DNA of 64,000 nt from contig SMSO01000032.1 of the NCBI GenBank assembly GCA_004764695.1, forward strand, positions 4,620,483-4,684,482, read 5' to 3'. Below, piece by piece: positions 4,980 to 17,468 of the stretch. The translations under genes were made by a program, and so were the position numbers. Source of the stretch: Schizochytrium sp. TIO01. Lineage: Eukaryota > Protista > Bigyra: Labyrinthulomycetes. Below the pieces are notes generated by a model. The model did no database searches, was not told where the DNA came from, and was given only the letters and a program-made list of their open reading frames with translations. Position 1 is the first letter of the stretch; each line of letters starts with the position of its first letter.

Positions 4980-5385
4980 GTTTATTCATTTATTCATAAA
5001 TGATTTATTTATTAATGTATTTATAAATAAATGATTTATTTATGAATAAATAAATGATTCATTCATTCATCCATTCATTTATTCATTTATTCATTTATTA
5101 ATTTATAACTCATGTATTTATTTATTCAGCCATCTACTTATTCATTTATTCATTTATTCATTTATTCATTTATTCATTTATAACTCATGTATTTATTTAT
5201 TCAGCCATCTACTTATTCATTCATTCATTCATTCATTCATTCATTCATTTATCCAGTTACTTATCCATTTACTTGTTCATTCATTCATTCGATTTTAATT
5301 TGATTCATTCATTCATTCATTCATTCATTTATCTATTTGTTTGTTTGTGTGTGTTTGTGTGTTTGTGTGTTTGTTTGTTTGTTTA
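4980..5385. repeat. (ATTC)/(ATTT)/(GTTT) microsatellite block with a ~45-bp internal duplication
   Basis: ATTTATAACTCATGTATTTATTTATTCAGCCATCTACTTATTCATT occurs at ~5101 and ~5176. Confidence 0.9.
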
Positions 5386-5715
5386 ATTATCCCGAACCTT
5401 AATCTCACGCAGAGCCTGTTCCTGTTGGGCCTACTCCACCCCCACTCATTCTTTCATTACCTGCTAAGTGATACAGGCGAATAAGCAATTTTATAATCAT
5501 GGAAGATTTTTGTAATTCTAATCGATTAAAAACTAAAGCAGCGAAGTAAGCAGGTTCCTACTTACATAAACTAGCAATCTGAAGTCGCTCTTCGCCTACT
5601 GCTCTTGTTTTCTTCTTTTGGCCCTTCCAAGTCTCTTCTATCGCCTTCGAGCGAAAGAATTGTTTCAGGTTATTTGTTTATTTATTTGTTTATCTACCTC
5701 ATCTATTGCTTTTTG

Positions 5716-5755
5716 TTTCTTCTTCTTCTTCTTCTTCTTCTTCTTCTTCTTCTTC
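5716..5755. repeat. (TTC)n microsatellite
   Basis: Seen directly. Confidence 0.95.
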
Positions 5756-5936
5756 TCTCAGAAGCTCCTCTCGTTTTGTTGTTTAAAATGTTGGGAAAGA
5801 AAGATGATAAAAAATTGCAATGCAAAAAGTTAGTGGAGGGGGGGCACAACCTTAGGCAAGGCCAGACCTCGAACTGGAGCAGCTCGCTGCTCAACCAGCA
5901 GGCCTTCATCGCAGCAACATCCTGTGAATTGGCACC

Positions 5937-8900
5937 ATGTGTCGCCTCACTGCCTACACGGGGCCGTCGATGTGCATCGCAGACCTCGTTACCCGTCCCG
6001 AGCGCTCGGTCATTCGCCAGTCTTTCGACGCCCGCGAGCGTCTTGGCGGCAGTGGTGGAGAGGTCTACGATATCGGCGCCCTTAATGCCGACGGATTTGG
6101 ACTTGGCTGGTACTCCTCCTCGTCATCATCATCCGCTTCACCCTCGCCCTGCGTCTTCACCGACGTTGGTCCTGCCTGGAATAATCGCAATCTCGTTAAT
6201 CTCGCTAGCAAGACCTCAAGTTCACTAGTCTTCGCACACGTACGAGCTGCTGGCCCGGGCATGGGCATTTGCACCTGTAGCTGTCACCCTTTTGAATTCG
6301 GCCGCTTCCTGTTCATGCATAATGGCCAGGTCTCCAACTTTGGCGGAAACGTGCGTCGGTCTTTGTTGGCTGGGCTGCGGTTGGAGGCCTTCAATTTTGC
6401 GCTGCGCAACAGCTGCTCAGACTCAGCACTGGCTTTCGCAGTCTTCATTGATCAGCTAGAGGACGGACTGCAAGAGGTGTCTCCAGCGCAGCTGCAAAAC
6501 CTGTTGCAGGAGACTATCAGGAGGGTTTGCGCTGCATGTGATCGGGAGCCCGAGGGAGGTGTCTCGCTCCTCAACTTCGTCGTCAGCGACGGCAAGTCCA
6601 TGGCAGCTACAAGGTACGTGCACGTACACCCGAGCAATCCAAAAGAAGTTCACGATTCTGCAAGGGCAGCTTCGCTTTACTTTGGAGCGGGATCCAGGTT
6701 TGAGCCTGAGGAAGAGACCAGAAGACAGCCCTCAAACTCATTAACTATGGAGTCAGATGGTTGCAATGCAGCAAGCTGCGGGTCAGACTGCAGCAAAGCT
6801 GCCATTCGGAGGTATCGCATGGCAAGGACAGATGTACGTGATGAACTGGTTATCATCACATCAGAACCGCTTACGGAACGTCGGGCGGATTGGATCTCAA
6901 TTCCACAGAACCACTTGGTGCTCGTAAGCCCATCAAAGAATGTCCTCTTGTCACCTATTGTGCAGGATAAGGAGCGGTGCTCTCCCGCAAGGAGGGAAAA
7001 CGCAGCACAGTTCGAACGTGTATTAGAGCGCATGGCACTTGCAGGCAAGGCTCGTCCTTCGCTTCTTACCGCATCGCAGACCAGACAAGCATCCATGCGG
7101 AATGTTGATTGCAATGTTGTGACGACAACATCGCCCTCTAGCGCTATTCTTCTGAGTCAGGATTCACCATTAAACATACCTAGAGGCATGGGCTCTGGTC
7201 GCGGTTCTGCGTTTAACCTCTTTCTCACAGATCAAGATGTGTCGCCTTTGGCCCTGGCTTCTCTTGAAGACGAGCAAAACTCCATGTCTCCTTTCCCAGA
7301 ACACACAATGTCAGGGTCCCATGAATCTGCGCTGCTTACAATGGCCACGTACAAGCATTACCTATTCTCTGCAGACAGTGCAAGCCCAGGATACTTATGC
7401 GTGTGGGATCTATCCGTCTGGAAGCGGCTCGCCAAAGTCTCCATTGAGAACTCTGGCACATTTGCCACTTGCGTGGACTCTAACCTTATGCGCCTCTATG
7501 CGTCATGCAGTGACAACTCAGTCATCGTTTGGCAAATTGTAGAAACGGACAACTCAATAAGCCTCGAAGAGAAGTTCAAGATCTTCTTTCCTCCCATCGG
7601 ACACATTATCTCGCTTGCGCTCGATGAGAAACGCCAGATTCTCTTTACCGGTTCACAAGATGCATGCATGCGAGCGGTGAATCTCAGCATCGAGAATGAG
7701 GCACCGACGGGATCTACTTTTATGGTACAGGCCGAAAAACAGCATAACTGCGGCGTTGGTATGTGGAGGCACGTCCTTGTGGAAGGTAGACCCGAGGCAG
7801 GGTGGCGAGCTAGTGATATCTTTGTCACCTCACATCTGTCCTACATTCATCGCATTATTGTTTGCGAGAACTTTGTAGCTAGTGGTAGCAGTGACGGCGT
7901 AGTCAAAATTTGGGACCGTGAGTCTCTGAACCTTATCACTTCACTCGTGGGTCATCGTAGTCGGGTCATGTCACTTACAGCGGACGAAGATTCCAAGTCG
8001 CTTTTCTCAGGTGGGCTCGACGGAACGATTCGCGTCTGGGACATGGAGACTTTTGTGTGCCGCAGGGTTCTCATGTGTGGTAGCCCTGTTCTTTGCGTCA
8101 TGGTGGCGCGGGACACTCGCTCAATTCTGATTTCAAGTCACACTGATGAGTCTATCTCCGTCTGGGATCTCCAAACCATGCAGATAACGGACTCTTTCAG
8201 AAACAGATCGGGTCTGGTCTTCAATATGGGTTTGCCTGTTGTTAGTCCTGAAGATGAATCTTCTGTAAACTTGAGTAGACGCGTGAAATCACTTGTTGCC
8301 TGTGCTACATCAACAGGTGCTGTGGTCTCGTTTAACTTACATAAGATGCAGAAAACTGCGGTGCGACGCGGGTCCGGCTCATGGCGTCAGGGATCTGCTG
8401 CGTCCTCTATGGAACAACGTTTCTTGTCAGCTGAGAAAATCTTCAGCGAAGCATTGGCCCCGGATGAGCGTGGGGAAATCGACTTGGATGACGCGCTCTT
8501 GCAGTCTTTGCATGAGATTATTCGCATTCGTACAATTTCAGCCCACCCTGATTACCACGAGGAGTGTTTTTTCGGAGCCAAGGTTATTGCCAGACTTTGC
8601 GAAAAGGTTGGGTGTGCTGATGTAAAACTCTGTTATGATGAGGTAGAACGTACCGACGAAACTATCCCAATTCTCCCGGTGGTTCTAGCTACGCTAGAGG
8701 CCAATGCTGGTGTGGAAGATCCATCTACCCTCATTATTTATGGCCACTATGATGTTGTTGGAGCTGTTCGTGCAACCTGGAATACCGACCCTTGGGAAAT
8801 GATTGGTAAAGACGGATATTTATATGGTCGAGGTGTAACAGATGATAAGGGCCCATTGCTGGCCTGTTTATTTGCTGCCAAAGCAGTGCATGCAGCCGGG

Positions 8901-9872
8901 AACTTGCGCTGCAACGTCACCTTCATTATTGAAGGTCAGGAGGAAAGCGGATTGGGTCTGATTCAACGTGGTTTTGCTAATGTCATTCAGGCCAATTCCG
9001 AGTTTTTCCACAAACCTTGCGGTATTGTTATTTCTAATAACTACTGGCTTGATGACAAGCGTCCGTGCTTGACATACGGTATGCGTGGTGTGATTGATTT
9101 GGATGTTGAAGTCCAAGGCTCAGACAAGGATCTTCATGCAGGTGTGCATGGTGGGCCAATTTATGAGCCAGCGGACGACTTGATGGCGCTCATGTCCACC
9201 TTTTCTTCCTCCCCCAAATCCCTATCAGCAATTGAAGGCCTCGGAGATGATATCCGTGGTCTCGATCCTGCAGAAATTGAGAACTTTGAGCGCATTAATC
9301 TCAGTGTTAAACACTACACCAAAGAGGTTGGCGTCCCGAAGCTCCGCGTAGAAAACCCTACCTGTATTTTGGCTGCCCGATGGTGCGAACCTTCACTCTC
9401 CATCAGTAGCTTGACAACCTCCAATGCTGGTCAACATTTCCGTCGTATCCCTAAATCTTGTTCTGCTCGCCTAAGTCTGCACTTTGTGCCTGACCAAGTA
9501 CCTGAGAAATTGGTGGATGCACTTCGTAGGCACTTGGAGAATACTTTCCAGGAACGTGGGTCTGTCAACAACCTACAGATCACCGTGCGACAGGTTAGTG
9601 ATTGGTGGCTTGGTGACACTACGAGTCAGCTCTTTAAGGTTGCAGAAGCAGCGATTCAATCTACATGGGGTGTGCGGCCTCTCCTTGTTCGTGAGGGCGG
9701 TTCTTACGGTGGTATATCAGCATTTCTTGAGAGTGCCTTGTCTGCGCCGGTCTTGCACTTGCCCATGGGTCAAGCTACGGATAGTGCTCATTTGCCGAAT
9801 GAGCGAATTAGTGTAGAGAATTTGCTTCAAGGTAAGCGTGTTGTGGAAGCACTTTTGTCGCGCCTTGAATAA
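5937..9872 (+). CDS. Fusion of a Dug3/EgtC-type class II glutamine amidotransferase, WD40 repeats and a Dug2-like M20A peptidase domain (putative glutathione-degradation protein)
   Basis: GATase motifs: MCRL (Ntn Cys2), NADGFGLGWY, PAWNNRNL, LVFAHVRAA, CHPF..FMHNG, LLNFVVSDG, ITSEPLT. WD40 motifs: SGSSDGVVKIWD, GH...SGGLDGTIRVWD. M20 motifs: YGHYDVV, GRGVTDDKGP, EGQEESG, DLHAGVHGG, REGGS, DSAHLPNE. Confidence 0.93.
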   Translation: MCRLTAYTGPSMCIADLVTRPERSVIRQSFDARERLGGSGGEVYDIGALNADGFGLGWYSSSSSSSASPSPCVFTDVGPAWNNRNLVNLASKTSSSLVFAHVRAAGPGMGICTCSCHPFEFGRFLFMHNGQVSNFGGNVRRSLLAGLRLEAFNFALRNSCSDSALAFAVFIDQLEDGLQEVSPAQLQNLLQETIRRVCAACDREPEGGVSLLNFVVSDGKSMAATRYVHVHPSNPKEVHDSARAASLYFGAGSRFEPEEETRRQPSNSLTMESDGCNAASCGSDCSKAAIRRYRMARTDVRDELVIITSEPLTERRADWISIPQNHLVLVSPSKNVLLSPIVQDKERCSPARRENAAQFERVLERMALAGKARPSLLTASQTRQASMRNVDCNVVTTTSPSSAILLSQDSPLNIPRGMGSGRGSAFNLFLTDQDVSPLALASLEDEQNSMSPFPEHTMSGSHESALLTMATYKHYLFSADSASPGYLCVWDLSVWKRLAKVSIENSGTFATCVDSNLMRLYASCSDNSVIVWQIVETDNSISLEEKFKIFFPPIGHIISLALDEKRQILFTGSQDACMRAVNLSIENEAPTGSTFMVQAEKQHNCGVGMWRHVLVEGRPEAGWRASDIFVTSHLSYIHRIIVCENFVASGSSDGVVKIWDRESLNLITSLVGHRSRVMSLTADEDSKSLFSGGLDGTIRVWDMETFVCRRVLMCGSPVLCVMVARDTRSILISSHTDESISVWDLQTMQITDSFRNRSGLVFNMGLPVVSPEDESSVNLSRRVKSLVACATSTGAVVSFNLHKMQKTAVRRGSGSWRQGSAASSMEQRFLSAEKIFSEALAPDERGEIDLDDALLQSLHEIIRIRTISAHPDYHEECFFGAKVIARLCEKVGCADVKLCYDEVERTDETIPILPVVLATLEANAGVEDPSTLIIYGHYDVVGAVRATWNTDPWEMIGKDGYLYGRGVTDDKGPLLACLFAAKAVHAAGNLRCNVTFIIEGQEESGLGLIQRGFANVIQANSEFFHKPCGIVISNNYWLDDKRPCLTYGMRGVIDLDVEVQGSDKDLHAGVHGGPIYEPADDLMALMSTFSSSPKSLSAIEGLGDDIRGLDPAEIENFERINLSVKHYTKEVGVPKLRVENPTCILAARWCEPSLSISSLTTSNAGQHFRRIPKSCSARLSLHFVPDQVPEKLVDALRRHLENTFQERGSVNNLQITVRQVSDWWLGDTTSQLFKVAEAAIQSTWGVRPLLVREGGSYGGISAFLESALSAPVLHLPMGQATDSAHLPNERISVENLLQGKRVVEALLSRLE

Positions 9873-12194
9873 TACTGCTATGCTACTAGCCTGAATCCCC
9901 GGGGTGCGCTTTGCCTGGTAATTTTTTTTTGCAGTACTGTACAAATTTAGTGATGTTCAGTGAATGCTGCTGTACACAAACTTATTCTTCAGTTTAACCT
10001 GTTAGTCAAGTAAGACCTGTAATGGTTTTGTTCTTTTTCTTATTATTTACTAGCTTGATTCCTTCGTTGGGCAGACTCTTATCTCTCTTCTATTTGAGTG
10101 TTTAAAACCTTCATATGACAGACTTTCGACAGCTCGCACAAGATTGAGGTAGGCAGTTTTAAAATCTCTGCTATGTAGAGAAGGTGAACAAACAATCCTT
10201 AGTGGGTAGCATCATGCAATAGTAGAGAAAAGACAATAAGACCTAGCAGCGTCCGATGTGTCATTAATGAATTATTTATATGACACTACTTCCTAATCTA
10301 CTCATCTGCGAGTGTAGATAAACGTAGGAAAGGGGAGGCCGCTCGTTAGGTACAGCACGTTGCCCCCGCTTTGACAAAAAACCGCTTCTCTGAAGCTCTC
10401 AGCTTTCAGATTTATTCAGATGTACCCCTAGCGCGTTTGTTTAGTCATTAAAAAAAATAAAACCCAGTCATTGTGATTTCGGTATGAATTAAGCGACATT
10501 CTTGAACTTATATTTTACTCAACAAAATGAAGGCCAATGTACCAGCCTATTGAACGCAACACGGAGCTTCTCTTTTCTGCTCAAAACAAAAACTACAATG
10601 CGAGCGATGTGCAGGTCGTCATTTCCTTCGTTTTTCCTCTTCTGACAACGATCGCATTTCCATACCCAATGTTCAGCCTCGTGTTTTGCTCTTCCAGGCA
10701 TTATTTTGACTTGAATCTTTGCCCGAGTAAAAGGATTGAGAGCGGTTGTAATACTCCTTGTCACTAACTACGTTATGGTAGGCACTTACGTTGAAATGCA
10801 TATCCGCTTGTAGAATGTAATTTACCAAGCACCATCAACCAAGAAAAGCTCGGCCCTCCCTCTGCATCAATCAATGGCCACTCTCTACTGCATCAATGCG
10901 CCCCACTCCAACATGAAGACAGCAGCCTCTTCTCAATGCACCATCTCCAATTGCTCAAATTGCGCAACGGCCGCTAGTGCTATCGGTAGTGAAGCGTTAG
11001 TCCCTTCTAATTATCGAGTGAGTGGTTACCTCGCTCTCGAGAAGGATCGCATTACAGCTGACCTTTAATATAGGCACCACTGCCGCTCAGTTCGTAGTAT
11101 AACTAGCTGCGCTAATAAAAGATACGAACCACATAGCTATGTTTCTTTGTTGGACTTATCTTGTTCCCTTATTGATCGCACACTATCCTTGGGTATGGCG
11201 TCTACTATATGAAGAAATAAACAATCATTTCACTGATTGATTGTGAGCTTCCCTTGTTTCCTTCCTTGAACTTGATGTGACTACCAGATGAGGCTCGATG
11301 CGGATCTATTTTGTGTGGTACAGGAATGCCATATTTTCATAAGTTTGCGTTCGTGGGCTCTTGAGGACCTCCTGCATTTCGACTTTGTACCCAATGAATG
11401 AGCGAATGAAAGAAATCACATAAGGTAAAACCAAAAGAAATAAAAACAGAAGGAGTGCGAAGGTCTCACTATTACCTATTCATAGGTAACTATTACCAGT
11501 AGTTAGAAGCGTGAGGATAGAGGCAAGTAGCTATCCATGGTAAATTACGCCACTTCGTTTGTTTCACTTGTGTTTCATTTGTTGTACTTTGTACCTCAAA
11601 AATAGTCTATTTACGCTTGGTCAAATTTCTATTTATAGACGGAGGTAGCAAGCAGTAGTAGTGTCTTCAATCGCCCGTTCACTCATTCTCGTTCGTTTGT
11701 TGGATGAAAACAATTGATCGATTGATCGCTTTTTTCGCTGTTGTTGGTGGCGCAGATCGCCATCCCCTCCGCATCCATATTGGACGCGCCCGCGGAGGAG
11801 GAGGAGGAGGAGGAGGACCTCACTCAACAAGGGACTGGGCTGTCTGCCCGAAGAGGCTGTGCCCACGCAGCGCTCATCCGTATCCATTGGAGCCCACCCA
11901 CGTCGCCTTCCTTTGCGGCCTTGGTCAAGAGCATCGACAACTTGGACACAAAGTTGTGACTGTCACGACCATCACAACAGAACCATATCGAAAAGACTTT
12001 CGCCTTCGTTTGAGATTGTGAAAATCTACATTGACATTGAAGACGCTGTTGAGTTTAACTACCGCATCCGCACGTCTGTTTAGACCTGGTAGGAAAACAA
12101 CGCAAGGAGCTGCGTTAGCAAAATCGGCACCGGTGCTGGCACATCTAGAGAGCTAACGTTATCTTCTTCACCTTTGCGAAAATCTTTCGAGACA

Positions 12195-15100
12195 ATGTTG
12201 TCTTCTGCAGCATCGAACTCGATGGTATCGAGTGGCGCAAACGGCAGCAACGGCGGCGGTACTAGCGGCAACAACAATAGCGGCACCGAGCGCGACGACT
12301 TCGCGAGTCTGCAGAACACTTCTGCTGCCCTGGGAAAGTTTGCTTCAGATGCGAAGCAGAACGGCCAGGAGCAGTTGGAGCTCACGAGTCTACTCAAGAA
12401 TGCAGGCGGCAGTTCCGACACGCAGTACTACTACCTAGACAAATTTAGCAAATATCGTGTGCCCGGTGTGGGCTCCACGGTCAAGTGGCTTCCGGCCGTA
12501 GAGGCTGTCGACTGCTGTCCTATCCCTCGCGCCATCCGAACTCTCTACTCCCAGATTGAGTGCGAGATGTTTATGGGCATCTTTCATGAGATTAACCGTG
12601 CGTGGATCACTATTGACAACAAACTCTTCCTGTGGAACTACTACAAGGAGGACGACTTCTACGTCTATGAAGGAGTAGACCAGTTAATTGTCTCTGTGGG
12701 TCTTGCTCGTCCTCGTCCAGGTATCTTCGATGCTGATGTGCAGTATCTTATTGTCATCTCTACTCCCGTCGAGGTGCTGCTCTTGCAGCTCAAGATCATT
12801 GGCCACCCCGTTTATGGCGATATTGTTTTGGAGCCTACCGAGTATAACATGGCCACCGACAACGTTCCCATGCGCTCCATCGCCGGCACTAAGGATGGTC
12901 GTATCTTCATGGCAGGCCACGATGGCTCCCTCTACGAATTCGTATACGAAGCTCCCAGTGTGCTCCACTCCCTCGGTCTCAAGCGCCAGTGTAGGAAGGT
13001 GGAACTCTCCAGCGCAAGCTCTTGGCCCATCCCTGGATTCATTCGCAGTCTCGCAGGGTCCCCGGACCCTCTTGTACAGGTCCTCATTGATCACGAGCGC
13101 GGCTTGCTCTACACGCTTTCCGACCGCTCGGCTCTCTCGATGTATCGCCTCCAGTCTTCCTCGGGCGATGGCAAGAGTGGCAGCAGTGGCAATGGAGTGA
13201 CGGCTGTGGTGGGTTCGAAGGACCTGACTCCTTTGGTTCGCAGCTTTGTAAACAATCCGCGGCATCAAATCGGCCGCAGTGGCGTGCGCAAGACGGACGT
13301 GAGCGAGCCTCTGCGCATCGTTTCTCTAAACGTCGTGCGCAAACAGGAGAGTGAGTCCATTCACCTCGTCGCAGTCACTCATCTTGGCGTGCGTATCTTT
13401 ATTGCTACGCGCAAGGGAGACAAGGACGGAAGTGATTTCCTCGTGGAGCATGTCAGAGGGCCGCCCAACAAGGAAGAAACAGCTGTGGCGCAAAACGGGG
13501 CGAGCTTCGGCAGCGGCAGTGCAAACATCAGTGGTAGTGGAGCCGGGAATTCCCTGAGCACGAGTCTTCTTGCGCAGAGGGGTGTCAACGGGATGGCGAG
13601 GAGCCCTATGGAGCGTCTCACTGATGGTATTGGACCGGGATCAGAGACCTCGAGCGTTGTAGGAGCTGCTATGTACGCAGGCGGAGTGACGCTACTTGCG
13701 AAGATTGGTGAGAACCAAAGCCTCCCGGATCTCGTAAGCGCAGGAGCTGGGGGCAAAGACGGGTCATTGGGCGGAAGTGGAGGACAAGGGGGAAACCGCA
13801 ACGCGGAGTATACCCTCACGGCATTCTCCACGGACCTCGGCATGCGGCAAGCAGCAACATCTTCAGCAGCGGGACCGCAAGGAGGCTTGAACCAGAACAA
13901 TTACCATGGAATTCAAAACCAGCAGTTTCAACAACAACAGCACCCTAACTTTGGCGCGACCGCCCGCCAGAACGTTGGGCACAGTCCGATGCCAGCAGCG
14001 TTCCCGCCGTTGAGATGGAAACAGGAGACTTACCACGAAGTCGTTGACCTCGATGTTCTTGAACAGGGACCAGAACTGAGACCCTCAATGTCAGACCGCA
14101 CGGCTAGACGTCCGACTAGGTCATCGCCTGTGGGCCGCGTCTGGGCCATGTGTGAAGCAACTTTCGACCCGACCATGAGTGAGGATGAGGAGACTGTCTA
14201 TAACCACATGATGTGCGCTCCTGATCCGGTACCTGTGCGCAAGGCTGATGCTAGCGACAAGAATGGAGCTGGGGTCTCCAAGTCGTCGTCTCGTAGCACA
14301 GGTCCGGCTAGCATTGCTGGCAATAAACGCAAAACGCCAGATTCCTCGGTCACATCTAGTGGATGGGCTTCATCTTCTTCTTCGCGGCAGCAACGAAATG
14401 GAGTTCTTTCGCTCACAGAGCTGGCCAAGCAGCATATCATGCCGCGACGCTATTTTCTCGTGCTCACCTCACACGGGCTGTGGGTCCTAGTCAAGAATCA
14501 TCCTATCAACCAGCTGTATGCTCTCCTGCGCGGCCCAGACCCCGGCTCCAACGCCGACATCGAGGAGTTTTTTAAGCAATATGGTCTCGATGAGAGCTGT
14601 GCTATGTGCCTCGCAATTGCTTGCAAAACTGGATTTGCTGATAATAAGGACCAGAATGCTAAATCTGGCGCAGCTAATGACGACCCGAGCCCATTCGCAG
14701 ACAGTGGCGCATCTGACGATGCAACGCAAAACCAATGGATCTTTAGACGTGCAGCCCTCTGGTTTAGCCGCATTGGCTATGGAATTGCCAATCTTTCACC
14801 GGATGCCTCGTTCCCATCTCACCACCAGTCGCTGCCGTGCTTCATAAATGGCCCTGGTATGCCGCAAGGAGTACCTTCCGGTATGAATATGGGCCCTGGT
14901 GGTCCTCCTGGCGCCAATTCGTTTGCATTGGTGTCTCCTACCGTACGCCCCATGGATGCCGCAGGAAGCCTTCAGCATTCTGGTTGCTATATGGGAATTT
15001 GCCTGCATGCGACTCGTTTGTTGCGACCAATCTGGGAGTGGACAGTCACCGTTGGCGCAGAACAGATGTATAATGCATCTTCTGAAGAGCCGATTGTGCG

Positions 15101-17468
15101 CAGCCGCTTCTCACCTGAGCAAATTGCTATGCTTGTGCGCCCCTTGGCTCGCCTGAAACAGTTCCTTCTCAACCAACCACCATTTTCTGACGCCATTCGG
15201 GAGTACCAACATGCTCAAAACTCTGGAGGTATCCCTGTCAAGTTTGAGCAACAAGTCTCTGCCTGGGTTGCATCGGGTCGCATTGGCATGCCACGTGGAC
15301 CCAGCCCGCAATCTCTGGAAAACATTGAGATTGCACAGGTGTACTTGCTGGTGGATCGCACGATCCAAGCTCTGCTACTTCTCGACATTCTCCAGACTCT
15401 GCCCAGCATGCGTTTTGCGCGTCTGGTGCTTTACTTAGATAGTGAGTTGCGCTCGGAATTAGCTAGCATGACATGGAGCGAACTTGTTACATCAAAGCAA
15501 GGTAAGATTGTGGCCTGTGCTTTGGTGAAAACCTTTGTTGAGCACAGCTCACGGGCTGCTGCCCGTGAGCTAGTTGCTCGTCTGGAGCGCTTTTGCCCTG
15601 CATTCTTCTCAGAGGGAGATGCTTTACAGATCTCTGCATTTGAGAAGATTGTTGCCGCAGAACAAGCAAACTCCAATCAGGAGCGCAACGAGCACATTGA
15701 GGAGTCGGTCGAACGCCTACGCCGTGGCTTTCAAAAGATCGCACCATCAGAAGCTAACATCGAGGTCACCCAAGCAACGCTTCGTGATGCCTGCGCTAAA
15801 TTTGAGACCTTGGATCGACCGGATGCTGCAGTAGACCTCGCACTCTTTTGCGCAGAGTGCTTCGCGGGTCAGGGTATTGATGTCCTGCCCATGCCTGATT
15901 CTACACCTAGTTCTGGCATTCGCGAGTACTGCTACGACCGTGCAGTTCAAGTTCTCTCTCGCTACTTCTCAAAGGATGCCAAGTTTGTGTCACGTGCGGC
16001 GTCTCAGAATGGGTCCTCGCAAGCAAATGCAGAGCACATAGAAATGGCAATGCAAATTGCACTTGACTCTAAGGATGCTCTGTGGCACTTCACGCTTTAC
16101 GACTGGTTTCTGAGCAAGGGTTTCAAACAACTTCTGTTAGATGTGCGCTCGCCGTTCATTGTACAGTTTCTTGGCGATGCAGTTGCTAACAACCCGCGCA
16201 AAGCTGGGTCAGGCATTTATGAGAAACCGTTTCATCGTGACATGCACCTGCTCCTGCAGGTCGAATGGTTTGCTCGTCATCAAGAGTTTACCCGTGCTTC
16301 TGAGGTTGTGCAGGGTCTGGCGAAGTTGGACGTTCGCCAGCACCTCACGGACAGTAGCGGTGCTTCATCCAGCGAGATCCAGCACGCGCAGCGGGATACA
16401 ATGCAGATAAGCACTAAGGACAGTGGCAACACAGATTCTGTAATGCAACCGCCTAATTTGGATCAGCGCATCAAATACTTCAACATGGCTCTGACTTACG
16501 GTAAGGCTGCCCAAGGTGTTGCGCATACCGGTCGGGGGCTCGATGTGTCCTATCTTAAGGACCAGCTTGATGTTGTGGAGCTCCAGCGTGTTGTGTTTTT
16601 CCAGCTGGAAGAGAGCACACATATTTTGGAGCAACAAAAATTCGGTGAGACGAAAAGCGACGAAAGAAGAGCTTGGGCTCAGGAAATACAAGCCCGTCGC
16701 CAAGCTCTTGAAACTTTAACTTGGACTCTCGTCGACTCAAGTGACCTCTACAATGAGTACGCGTTTCGCTTTGAATTATGGGAATCCTGCATTCGCATTA
16801 TGCAAGTGTGCGACTACCGCGATATCGAGGAGTTGCAGACTGTGTATAAGAACATTATCCGCGCATGTATTGCTAACGCTCGATTCAATTCTTCCAAGAT
16901 CCCTCCTATGCACGATCTCGTCCCTTCGTTGAGATCTTGCATCTTGGACCTTGGCCGTAAATTCTATATTGACGGAGCCCCCTCCTCGTTTGCCTTTCCT
17001 CATGAATACTTGATTCAGGGTCTGGAAGATTTGACTACCTTTCACGAAGCTGGAGAATTGTCTAGTATTTACAAAGGGGGTGAATGGGACCCTTGGGTAG
17101 TGAAGGTAATGTTGGAGGTTGGAGTTTCCTCTTCTGAACTTCTTGAAGCTTACGCAAACTACAACAAGAAGATCAATAATCCTAACGCACACCCTATTGG
17201 ATTGTCATTCCTTCCCGGTGAGGAAGATGATCAAGGCTGGTACTCAGACCGCTCAAAGTTGCACGTCTCAAGCGCCATTGTAGCACTTATTTCACACTTT
17301 TGTAGCCAGCCAGAGGCAAGGATACTCTCAGATCCTCGCGTTCGTGATCTTTTAGAAAATCTCCGTGCCATTGTTGGTGGTCTCCATGCTGATGATATTC
17401 AGCCCGAGACTCGTTCAAGGGTCAACCAGCAAATTTCCCAACTTATCAGCGAAATTCATAACAACTAA
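12195..17468 (+). CDS. NUP155: Nucleoporin Nup155/Nup170
   Basis: MGIFHEINRAWITIDNKLFLWNY, VGLARPRPGIF, TKDGRIFMAGHDGSLYEFVY, RLLRPIWE, CPAFFS, LYNEYA..FELWE. The first ATG is at 12195 (the track start 12174 is TTG). Confidence 0.95.
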   Translation: MLSSAASNSMVSSGANGSNGGGTSGNNNSGTERDDFASLQNTSAALGKFASDAKQNGQEQLELTSLLKNAGGSSDTQYYYLDKFSKYRVPGVGSTVKWLPAVEAVDCCPIPRAIRTLYSQIECEMFMGIFHEINRAWITIDNKLFLWNYYKEDDFYVYEGVDQLIVSVGLARPRPGIFDADVQYLIVISTPVEVLLLQLKIIGHPVYGDIVLEPTEYNMATDNVPMRSIAGTKDGRIFMAGHDGSLYEFVYEAPSVLHSLGLKRQCRKVELSSASSWPIPGFIRSLAGSPDPLVQVLIDHERGLLYTLSDRSALSMYRLQSSSGDGKSGSSGNGVTAVVGSKDLTPLVRSFVNNPRHQIGRSGVRKTDVSEPLRIVSLNVVRKQESESIHLVAVTHLGVRIFIATRKGDKDGSDFLVEHVRGPPNKEETAVAQNGASFGSGSANISGSGAGNSLSTSLLAQRGVNGMARSPMERLTDGIGPGSETSSVVGAAMYAGGVTLLAKIGENQSLPDLVSAGAGGKDGSLGGSGGQGGNRNAEYTLTAFSTDLGMRQAATSSAAGPQGGLNQNNYHGIQNQQFQQQQHPNFGATARQNVGHSPMPAAFPPLRWKQETYHEVVDLDVLEQGPELRPSMSDRTARRPTRSSPVGRVWAMCEATFDPTMSEDEETVYNHMMCAPDPVPVRKADASDKNGAGVSKSSSRSTGPASIAGNKRKTPDSSVTSSGWASSSSSRQQRNGVLSLTELAKQHIMPRRYFLVLTSHGLWVLVKNHPINQLYALLRGPDPGSNADIEEFFKQYGLDESCAMCLAIACKTGFADNKDQNAKSGAANDDPSPFADSGASDDATQNQWIFRRAALWFSRIGYGIANLSPDASFPSHHQSLPCFINGPGMPQGVPSGMNMGPGGPPGANSFALVSPTVRPMDAAGSLQHSGCYMGICLHATRLLRPIWEWTVTVGAEQMYNASSEEPIVRSRFSPEQIAMLVRPLARLKQFLLNQPPFSDAIREYQHAQNSGGIPVKFEQQVSAWVASGRIGMPRGPSPQSLENIEIAQVYLLVDRTIQALLLLDILQTLPSMRFARLVLYLDSELRSELASMTWSELVTSKQGKIVACALVKTFVEHSSRAAARELVARLERFCPAFFSEGDALQISAFEKIVAAEQANSNQERNEHIEESVERLRRGFQKIAPSEANIEVTQATLRDACAKFETLDRPDAAVDLALFCAECFAGQGIDVLPMPDSTPSSGIREYCYDRAVQVLSRYFSKDAKFVSRAASQNGSSQANAEHIEMAMQIALDSKDALWHFTLYDWFLSKGFKQLLLDVRSPFIVQFLGDAVANNPRKAGSGIYEKPFHRDMHLLLQVEWFARHQEFTRASEVVQGLAKLDVRQHLTDSSGASSSEIQHAQRDTMQISTKDSGNTDSVMQPPNLDQRIKYFNMALTYGKAAQGVAHTGRGLDVSYLKDQLDVVELQRVVFFQLEESTHILEQQKFGETKSDERRAWAQEIQARRQALETLTWTLVDSSDLYNEYAFRFELWESCIRIMQVCDYRDIEELQTVYKNIIRACIANARFNSSKIPPMHDLVPSLRSCILDLGRKFYIDGAPSSFAFPHEYLIQGLEDLTTFHEAGELSSIYKGGEWDPWVVKVMLEVGVSSSELLEAYANYNKKINNPNAHPIGLSFLPGEEDDQGWYSDRSKLHVSSAIVALISHFCSQPEARILSDPRVRDLLENLRAIVGGLHADDIQPETRSRVNQQISQLISEIHNN

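Follow-up and report, generated by a model that had tools for sequence, protein, structure and literature searches.

We report a single gene of the thraustochytrid Schizochytrium sp. TIO01 whose product is probably a cytosolic, single-chain counterpart of the glutathione-degrading amidase that Dug2p and Dug3p form in yeast. The gene lies on the forward strand of a 64,000-nucleotide (nt) stretch of contig SMSO01000032.1, which we refer to as the window; unless stated otherwise, coordinates are those of the window. In yeast, (DUG2-DUG3)2 cleaves glutathione (GSH) to Glu and Cys-Gly (PMC9804317), and the Dug2p/Dug3p complex also cleaves gamma-Glu-Met (PMC7617739). The Saccharomyces cerevisiae (Dug2p-Dug3p)2 complex has the same three domains as the window protein, namely an N-terminal nucleophile (Ntn) class II glutamine amidotransferase (GATase II) with an N-terminal cysteine, a WD40 propeller, and an M20A domain. 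Yet the yeast complex consists of two polypeptides, whereas the window protein is one, with a disordered tether of ~100 residues. By analogy, the same reaction, GSH to Glu plus Cys-Gly, may be presumed for the window protein. Our assignment follows from the domain architecture, the collinearity with Dug2, an active-site signature, two domain trees, the gene content of the genome, and a controlled docking prediction.

Positions 5937-9872 (+) hold one unbroken open reading frame (ORF) that starts with ATG and runs for 1311 codons, according to the ORF listing and its translation. The product begins with MCRLTAY, so that residue 2 is a cysteine, and since an in-frame stop lies four codons 5' of the ATG, a longer N-terminus is impossible in the same frame. 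The features assigned to the gene, with amino acids (aa) numbered from Met1, are the following.

5937..9872, forward strand: complete, intron-free coding sequence (CDS) of 1311 codons plus stop, from the ORF listing and the jointless contigs of four runs
5835..5936, forward strand: probable 5' untranslated leader, from the contig starts of three runs (guessed to be RNA) and the stop four codons before the ATG
9873..10528, forward strand: probable 3' untranslated region, from contig ends at 10456 (run X9) and 10528 (run X2), the runs being guessed to be RNA
5937..6965, forward strand: Dug3-type Ntn (class II) amidase of the glutamine amidotransferase fold, aa 1-343, from PF13230 and conserved catalytic residues
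5940..5942, forward strand: codon of Cys2, the predicted N-terminal nucleophile after removal of Met1, from the translation and the Met-Cys start of relatives
6966..7268, forward strand: linker, aa 344-444, one helix followed by a disordered stretch rich in Ser, Arg, and Ala, from model confidence (predicted local distance difference test, pLDDT) and composition
7269..8372, forward strand: seven-bladed WD40 propeller, aa 445-812, the predicted docking platform of the amidase, from Pfam, AlphaFold, and Foldseek
8481..9869, forward strand: Dug2-type M20A domain, aa 849-1311, probably a dimerising pseudo-peptidase, from PF01546, bit scores, and the tree
9036..9038, forward strand: codon of Asn1034, in place of the metal-binding Asp195 of CNDP2, from the alignment to 2zof and 4g1p

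The whole gene, from ~5835/5855 to 10456/10528, is spanned without a joint by contigs assembled from four public runs that belong to different studies; thus, the reading frame is intact in independent samples. In three runs of different studies the contigs start at 5835, 5855, and 5835, and on the 3' side two whole contigs, one from run X9 and one from run X2, stop at 10456 and 10528, respectively. This pattern fits an unspliced mRNA and would give it a leader of ~100 nt and a trailer of ~600 nt. The runs were taken as RNA by guess, and the repeat flagged upstream could equally break a DNA assembly. No contig of the four runs covers the AT-rich stretch at 4988-5834, immediately upstream of the gene; its GC content is ~35%, and repeats are flagged at 4988-5393 and 5667-5764. 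In addition, a 4164-nt contig of the Logan collection encodes an identical 1300-aa product (P0001). Strain differences within the CDS number 12, of which 9 are synonymous. An artefact of the gene model or of the assembly is ruled out, as the ORF is unbroken both in the genome and in the contigs of four independent runs.

Domain borders were taken from an AlphaFold model that covers residues 1-840 and draws on 49 fused homologues (mean pLDDT, 81; predicted template modelling score, 0.84). When the N-terminal piece was scanned alone against Pfam, it matched GATase_4 (PF13230) with 38.7 bits versus a cutoff of 23. Within the linker, aa 373-444 have a pLDDT below 50; across the fused family, the gap between amidase and WD40 domain has a median of 131 residues. 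WD40 and many other beta-propeller families of Pfam match at about aa 630-810, while the model places 28 strands in 7 blades over aa 445-812, and a Foldseek search with the two-domain model returned generic WD40 propellers only. Peptidase_M20 (PF01546) matches aa 933-1308 of the whole protein (E value, 2.8e-23; 2.7e-24 in a separate piece scan), with a weak match to M20_dimer at the C-terminus. A reading made earlier from the sequence alone had described an uninterrupted ORF with an Ntn amidotransferase, WD40 repeats, and an M20A domain. This holds for the full 1311 codons, and the domain coordinates it gave agree with the model borders to within a few tens of bases. The intact Cys2 that it claimed is borne out by the translation (MCRL) and the upstream in-frame stop. 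Its central proposal, a fusion of Dug3-type and Dug2-type parts in a stramenopile rather than a fungus, is supported by the architecture, the collinearity with Dug2, Asn1034, and the trees described below.

The C-terminal two thirds of the protein are collinear, end to end, with named fungal Dug2 proteins, as judged from sequence alignments. Residues 430-1311 align with residues 1-869 of Kluyveromyces marxianus Dug2 (26% identity; E value, 6e-81), with residues 3-868 of K. lactis “Dug2,” and with residues 21-804 of a Neolecta “putative di- and tripeptidase DUG2.” Identity to the fungal proteins is 26-28% in the Dug2 part and 36% in the Dug3 part. In the PDB, the M20 domain matches CNDP2 (2zof, 237 bits) and Dug1 (4g1p, 208 bits); among sequence relatives, fungal Dug2 proteins score 250-283 bits versus 219-222 bits for Dug1/CNDP2. 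Dug1p and CNDP2 have the M20A fold in common with the window domain, are 31-34% identical to it, and agree with it at most catalytic and dimer-contact positions. The window M20 domain differs from CNDP2 in having Asn in place of Asp195 and His in place of Arg343, and it sits behind a WD40 propeller, unlike Dug1p/CNDP2.

The first of these substitutions affects the metal site. Alignment to 2zof and 4g1p shows that the ISDNYW motif of CNDP2 reads ISNNYW in the window, which turns the metal ligand Asp195 into Asn1034; the equivalents of His101, Asp132, Glu167, and His445 are retained, leaving four of the five ligands. Across the 157 full-length M20 domains that we collected, the fused proteins have Asn in this column in 51 of 54 cases, and the WD40-M20 proteins (fungal Dug2 and its like) have it in 26 of 26, whereas each of the 18 sequences in the CNDP2/Dug1 clade has Asp. 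Fungal Dug2 thus has the same Asp-to-Asn change as the window. Asn at this position is a Dug2 signature derived in the present analysis and has no published definition. In a tree of 88 M20 domains (LG+G4), CNDP2 and Dug1 form one clade (Shimodaira-Hasegawa-like approximate likelihood ratio test [SH-aLRT], 99; the 18 sequences with Asp195) that excludes the window, and fungal Dug2 forms another (99). The window domain groups with those of three full-length fused relatives, P0002-P0004 (99), which are 47-51% identical to the window protein over its whole length. A CNDP2/Dug1 identity of the M20 domain is ruled out by Asn1034 and by its placement outside that clade.

In 30 of 54 fused proteins, among them that of Hemistasia, the general base of the peptidase (Glu166 in CNDP2) has given way to Gly, Gln, Ala, or another residue. 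This base is also replaced in Saprolegnia, and it is retained in 24 of the 26 WD40-M20 proteins and in the window itself (aa 1002; 8940-8942). The Spirogloea copies carry Ser at the positions of both Asp195 and His445. From these sequences, several lineages seem to be losing the peptidase character of the M20 domain.

Residues of the amidase were compared in an alignment of 37 fused, 8 fungal Dug3, 10 oomycete-type, and 14 bacterial proteins. Cys2, Asn50, Asp52, Arg103, His128-Asn129-Gly130, Arg141, and Asp162 are invariant or have one or two exceptions, apart from truncated N-termini; Arg103, Asn129-Gly130, and Asp162 are invariant over the 69 relatives. The closest prokaryotic relatives are members of a bacterial family of 285-aa class II proteins (PDB 3mdn), which have an identical catalytic set, are often annotated automatically as EgtC, and stand alone without a WD40 or M20 partner, unlike the window protein. 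The N-terminal domain matches 3mdn with 85 bits versus 42 bits for mycobacterial EgtC (4zfj). In the amidase tree, all fused proteins form one clade (SH-aLRT, 99), which includes 13 short or “partial” gene models and lies beside a group (87) that unites fungal Dug3 with the bacterial 285-aa family. The clade that we term fungal Dug3 comprises proteins of Lipomyces, Umbelopsis, Savitreella, Microbotryum, Sympodiomycopsis, and Puccinia, of which those of Umbelopsis and Savitreella carry the name “glutamine amidotransferase subunit.” A third clade consists of stand-alone proteins of oomycetes, Rhizaria, and others. Neither domain tree mixes the fused proteins with the split ones of fungi, which lie in clades of their own. 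Both are quick LG+G4 trees with SH-aLRT support only, and they do not fix the deep branching or the direction of change between fusion and fission. The domain phylogenies that the sequence-only reading had suggested as a check place the domains outside the CNDP2/Dug1 clade, and EgtC, compared by PDB and NCBIfam scores, is distant; the grouping with EgtC or CNDP2 that this reading had named as its refutation was not seen in these comparisons.

Members of the bacterial 285-aa family are 44-48% identical to fungal Dug3. No consistent operon that reveals a function was found in the gene context that we inspected around the bacterial relatives. Their neighbours vary and include an esterase (twice), a Na/glutamate symporter, and a Cys/Met pyridoxal phosphate (PLP) enzyme. 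The EgtD gene is absent from three of five host genomes and does not adjoin the amidase gene in the other two; it is on another contig in one of them and, in the other, ~365 kb away if on the same contig. For these bacterial proteins, EgtC is probably a wrong label.

A complex prediction for the amidase (aa 1-343) and the propeller (aa 445-812) reached an interaction prediction score from aligned errors (ipSAE) of 0.85 (0.87, 0.85, and 0.84 in separate runs), versus 0.04 for the best of three controls. In a benchmark, that mark is reached by 51 of 78 solved complexes and by 2 of 108 mismatched pairs. Contacts agree between runs to at least 91%, and the partner has a pLDDT of at least 80. On the amidase side, the predicted interface comprises residues 250-252, 294-302, 315-324, and 333-340. 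Residue 300 contacts residues 467, 558, 638, 678, 719, and 762 in the model, several of them in inner strands of successive blades; thus, the model puts residue 300 on the propeller axis. In most fused, fungal Dug3, and oomycete-type proteins, positions 299-301 are Asp-(Arg/Lys)-Arg and Leu occupies position 337, whereas all four positions vary in the stand-alone bacterial proteins. This conservation pattern fits a docking mode common to the fused and split eukaryotic forms. No structure of Dug2 or Dug3 is among the PDB sequence matches of the whole protein, the N-terminal domain, or the M20 domain.

From these results, we propose the following mechanism as the most likely one. With Met1 removed by methionine aminopeptidase, Cys2 would serve as nucleophile at the N-terminus of the Ntn amidase, which would then hydrolyse the gamma-glutamyl amide bond of glutathione to release glutamate and Cys-Gly and would probably act on other gamma-glutamyl peptides too. 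Asn129-Gly130 would form the oxyanion hole, with Arg103 and Asp162 holding the glutamyl head group. The C-terminal sheet of the amidase, through the predicted interface residues, would dock on the top face and axis of the propeller, where the flexible tether of ~100 residues would keep it. The M20A domain, one metal ligand short as in every Dug2, would serve mainly as a dimerisation scaffold, and the active particle would be a homodimer equivalent to (Dug2p-Dug3p)2. Cys-Gly would be finished by another peptidase; the genome, which lacks Dug1/CNDP2, offers two M17 aminopeptidases as well as a distant M20 for this step.

The gene content of the assembly (64 Mb in 37 contigs) bears on this last step. 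A search with a named DUG1 (P0514) found no separate Dug1/CNDP2; its best match is the M20 domain of the fusion itself (34% identity, 220 bits), followed by a PRK07907-like M20 with 72 bits. Unlike the yeast DUG pathway, the window genome lacks a Dug1 partner, and the statement of the sequence-only reading that Dug1p then cleaves Cys-Gly does not transfer as it stands. A separate Dug2 or Dug3 is likewise missing from the genome, the closest proteins being a distant GATase_4 paralogue, the PRK07907-like M20, and an aminoacylase-1-like M20. The genome also encodes one gamma-glutamyl transpeptidase, one ChaC, and the two M17 aminopeptidases; no EgtD-type methyltransferase (PF10017) matched in it.

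The GATase_4 paralogue is the only other gene of its family in the genome, at L005:1303-2514 (+), equivalent to G000:C30 ~8282792-8284003 (PF13230, 46 bits). A hydrophobic leader in this ORF runs as far as “...VPIQG,” immediately before “CRWAIL.” If this leader is a signal peptide, the sequence would suggest a secreted or organellar Ntn amidase whose cysteine is exposed by leader removal, not by Met removal.

The missing Dug1 leaves room for another reading of the fusion, in which the amidase frees Cys-Gly and the protein's own M20 domain, acting with a single metal or with the Asn as a ligand, cleaves it to Cys and Gly, replacing Dug1. The thraustochytrid fusion would then be a complete degradosome taking glutathione to its three amino acids, and the DUG system of eukaryotes may have started from the fused form instead of the split arrangement of fungi. 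The DUG1 search lends this some weight, as nothing in the genome matches better than the fusion's M20, and so does the retention in the window and its three closest relatives of His937, Asp939, Asp969, Glu1002, Glu1003, His1067, Glu1253, and His1285, together with a CNDP2-like “TDDKG” motif. Yet the Asp195 ligand is Asn in nearly all fused proteins and in every Dug2-type protein, and since more than half of the fused proteins have lost the general base, peptidase activity is no conserved property of the family. The position of CNDP2 Arg343, which we take to be a substrate-binding residue, is His in the window, and the two M17 aminopeptidases and the PRK07907-like M20 are available for Cys-Gly. 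Finally, for yeast Dug2p, Kaur et al. (2012) reportedly found no peptidase activity, binding of Dug3p via the WD40 domain, and dimerisation via the M20 domain. We therefore regard both the one-chain degradosome and the ancestral state that may go with it as unlikely.

The chemistry could also be as proposed and the substrate different, with the enzyme acting on glutathione conjugates, gamma-glutamyl dipeptides, or another gamma-glutamyl thiol, not on bulk glutathione. The cleavage of gamma-Glu-Met by yeast Dug2p/Dug3p (PMC7617739) agrees with such a role, as do the varied neighbours of the bacterial relatives and the presence in this genome of a gamma-glutamyl transpeptidase and a ChaC to handle glutathione. 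However, yeast has enzymes of both kinds beside its DUG system, so redundancy is normal (PMC7617739), and we observed no sequence feature that points to another substrate; this too we consider improbable. Far less probable is an EgtC-like step of ergothioneine synthesis, that is, removal of glutamate from gamma-glutamyl-hercynylcysteine sulfoxide. EgtC (4zfj, TIGR03442) shares with the window amidase the GATase_4 Ntn fold, the Cys2 nucleophile, and the hydrolysis of a gamma-glutamyl amide. TIGR03442 is the only NCBIfam model matched by the N-terminal domain (E value, 5e-49), and several bacterial relatives are automatically named EgtC by JGI. Yet the match, at 166.8 bits, falls below the curated cutoff of 218.65, and EgtC is a stand-alone protein of ~235 aa, unlike the fusion, whose partner domains are Dug2-type. 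The closest bacterial relatives mostly lack EgtD or carry it away from the amidase gene. The sub-cutoff TIGR03442 score, the 42-bit match to the solved mycobacterial EgtC, and the absence of EgtD from the genome largely rule out this role.

Several points weigh against the assignment of the gene as a single-chain Dug3-Dug2 amidase. The ORF, the domains, the catalytic residues, the family relations, and the lack of Dug1 and EgtD are seen directly in the data, whereas the substrate, the docking, the dimer, and the inactivity of the M20 domain are steps that we infer. The window amidase is no closer to fungal Dug3 (36% identity to the Lipomyces Dug3-type protein P0233) than to the bacterial stand-alone proteins (38-40%); hence, the substrate assignment rests on the Dug2-type partner. 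The complex model supports binding between amidase and WD40 domain but, being a prediction, does not show it, and the window reads Asp-Val-Arg at 299-301, with Val300 instead of the family's usual Arg. The M20 domain keeps all its other catalytic residues, including the general base Glu1002, so that its inactivity is no more than probable. The unspliced mRNA is read from runs guessed to be RNA.

The window gene is an ordinary member of a large, widely distributed fused family and not a one-off, as judged from the proteins retrieved, 75 others of which have the order GATase-WD40-M20. The amidase comes first in all 76 three-domain proteins, and no other order occurs among them; this agrees with the sequence-only reading, which saw Dug3 placed first in the window protein as the Ntn mechanism requires. 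Of the 75 fused relatives, 48 start with Met-Cys, and most of the rest look as if their gene calls had been cut short or extended. With the amidase domain as query, an exhaustive HMMER search gave 2469 relatives at E values of at most 1e-3, and 38 of the best 150 cluster representatives are at least 1000 aa long. The fusion occurs in choanoflagellates (Mylnosiga fluctuans, Salpingoeca kvevrii, Salpingoeca helianthica, and Hartaetosiga balthica), in the ichthyosporean Creolimax fragrantissima, and in the streptophyte alga Spirogloea muscicola, which has three copies. It also occurs in diplonemids (Diplonema japonicum and a Hemistasia-type entry labelled K14262/DUG2), in green algae (Pedinophyceae sp. 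and Volvox africanus), in the red alga Gracilaria domingensis (as “Nucleophile aminohydrolase”), and in the alveolate Vitrella brassicaformis. Contrary to the rarity implied by the sequence-only reading, database entries with automatic names such as K14262/DUG2 show the same architecture in dozens of lineages that span eukaryotic supergroups. Outside fungi, the collected sequences suggest that Dug2/Dug3 homologues are mostly single-chain.

Split versions also exist outside fungi, namely, a 350-aa amidase of Aphanomyces (entries P0189 and P0214) and a WD40-M20 protein of Saprolegnia (P0450). In the domain trees, the oomycete stand-alone amidase and WD40-M20 proteins both lie outside the fused clades. 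Stramenopiles hold both arrangements, fused and split. Nannochloropsis gaditana has an amidase named “wd repeat-containing protein, partial” and a WD40-M20 protein named “Zn-dependent exopeptidase” (P0133 and P0404); both models adjoin a fused protein in the trees, and the pair may be one gene split by annotation. In P0266 (1502 aa), the Dug3-type amidase is at residues 1052-1337 and not N-terminal. An Ntn enzyme in this internal position would be unusable without proteolytic processing, and P0266 represents a merged gene model or else a precursor that undergoes processing.

The DUG pathway is still called fungus-specific in recent work (PMC9012958), a label that, judged by the sequences above, is wrong. 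The searchable literature on Dug3 is fungal, apart from a paper on Euglena and from plant and Francisella papers in which the yeast findings are cited. The Euglena paper reports a Euglena gracilis contig, GDJR01091960.1, as a single-contig orthologue of “GSH degradosome proteins” that is up-regulated in hypoxia (Sci Rep 2019, PMC6351624). Like the window gene, this contig represents a nonfungal DUG homologue; the accessible text of the paper mentions neither a fusion nor a domain order (PMC6351624), and related diplonemid proteins in our set, from Diplonema japonicum and Hemistasia, are fused. No description of the fusion was found in the searchable literature that mentions Dug3, nor did we find a searchable paper that joins WD40, M20, glutamine amidotransferase, and glutathione. 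The sequence-only reading knew of no description either, which stands as far as papers go. It does not extend to the databases, which hold the fusion, or to the Euglena orthologue, which the accessible text of that paper reports (PMC6351624). The gene is real and is a fused variant of a known enzyme, present in databases under automatic names.

Among the neighbours of the fusion gene, a large uninterrupted ORF of 1764 codons occupies 12174-17468 (+), ~2.3 kb downstream.

The interest of the gene lies at the level of the family, in a fused form that is dominant outside fungi, an M20 domain with the mark of a pseudo-enzyme, and a genome without Dug1. The change from Asp195 to Asn provides a simple annotation marker to separate Dug2-type pseudo-peptidase domains from Dug1/CNDP2. 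As a natural Rosetta stone, the fusion is evidence of contact between Dug3 and the WD40 domain, and it offers a 1:1 single-chain construct for structural work. The occurrence of Dug2/Dug3 homologues in holozoans, green and red algae, alveolates, stramenopiles, and euglenozoans changes the presumed distribution and origin of the pathway. For thraustochytrids, which are organisms of industrial use, the gene represents a candidate route of glutathione and sulfur recycling.

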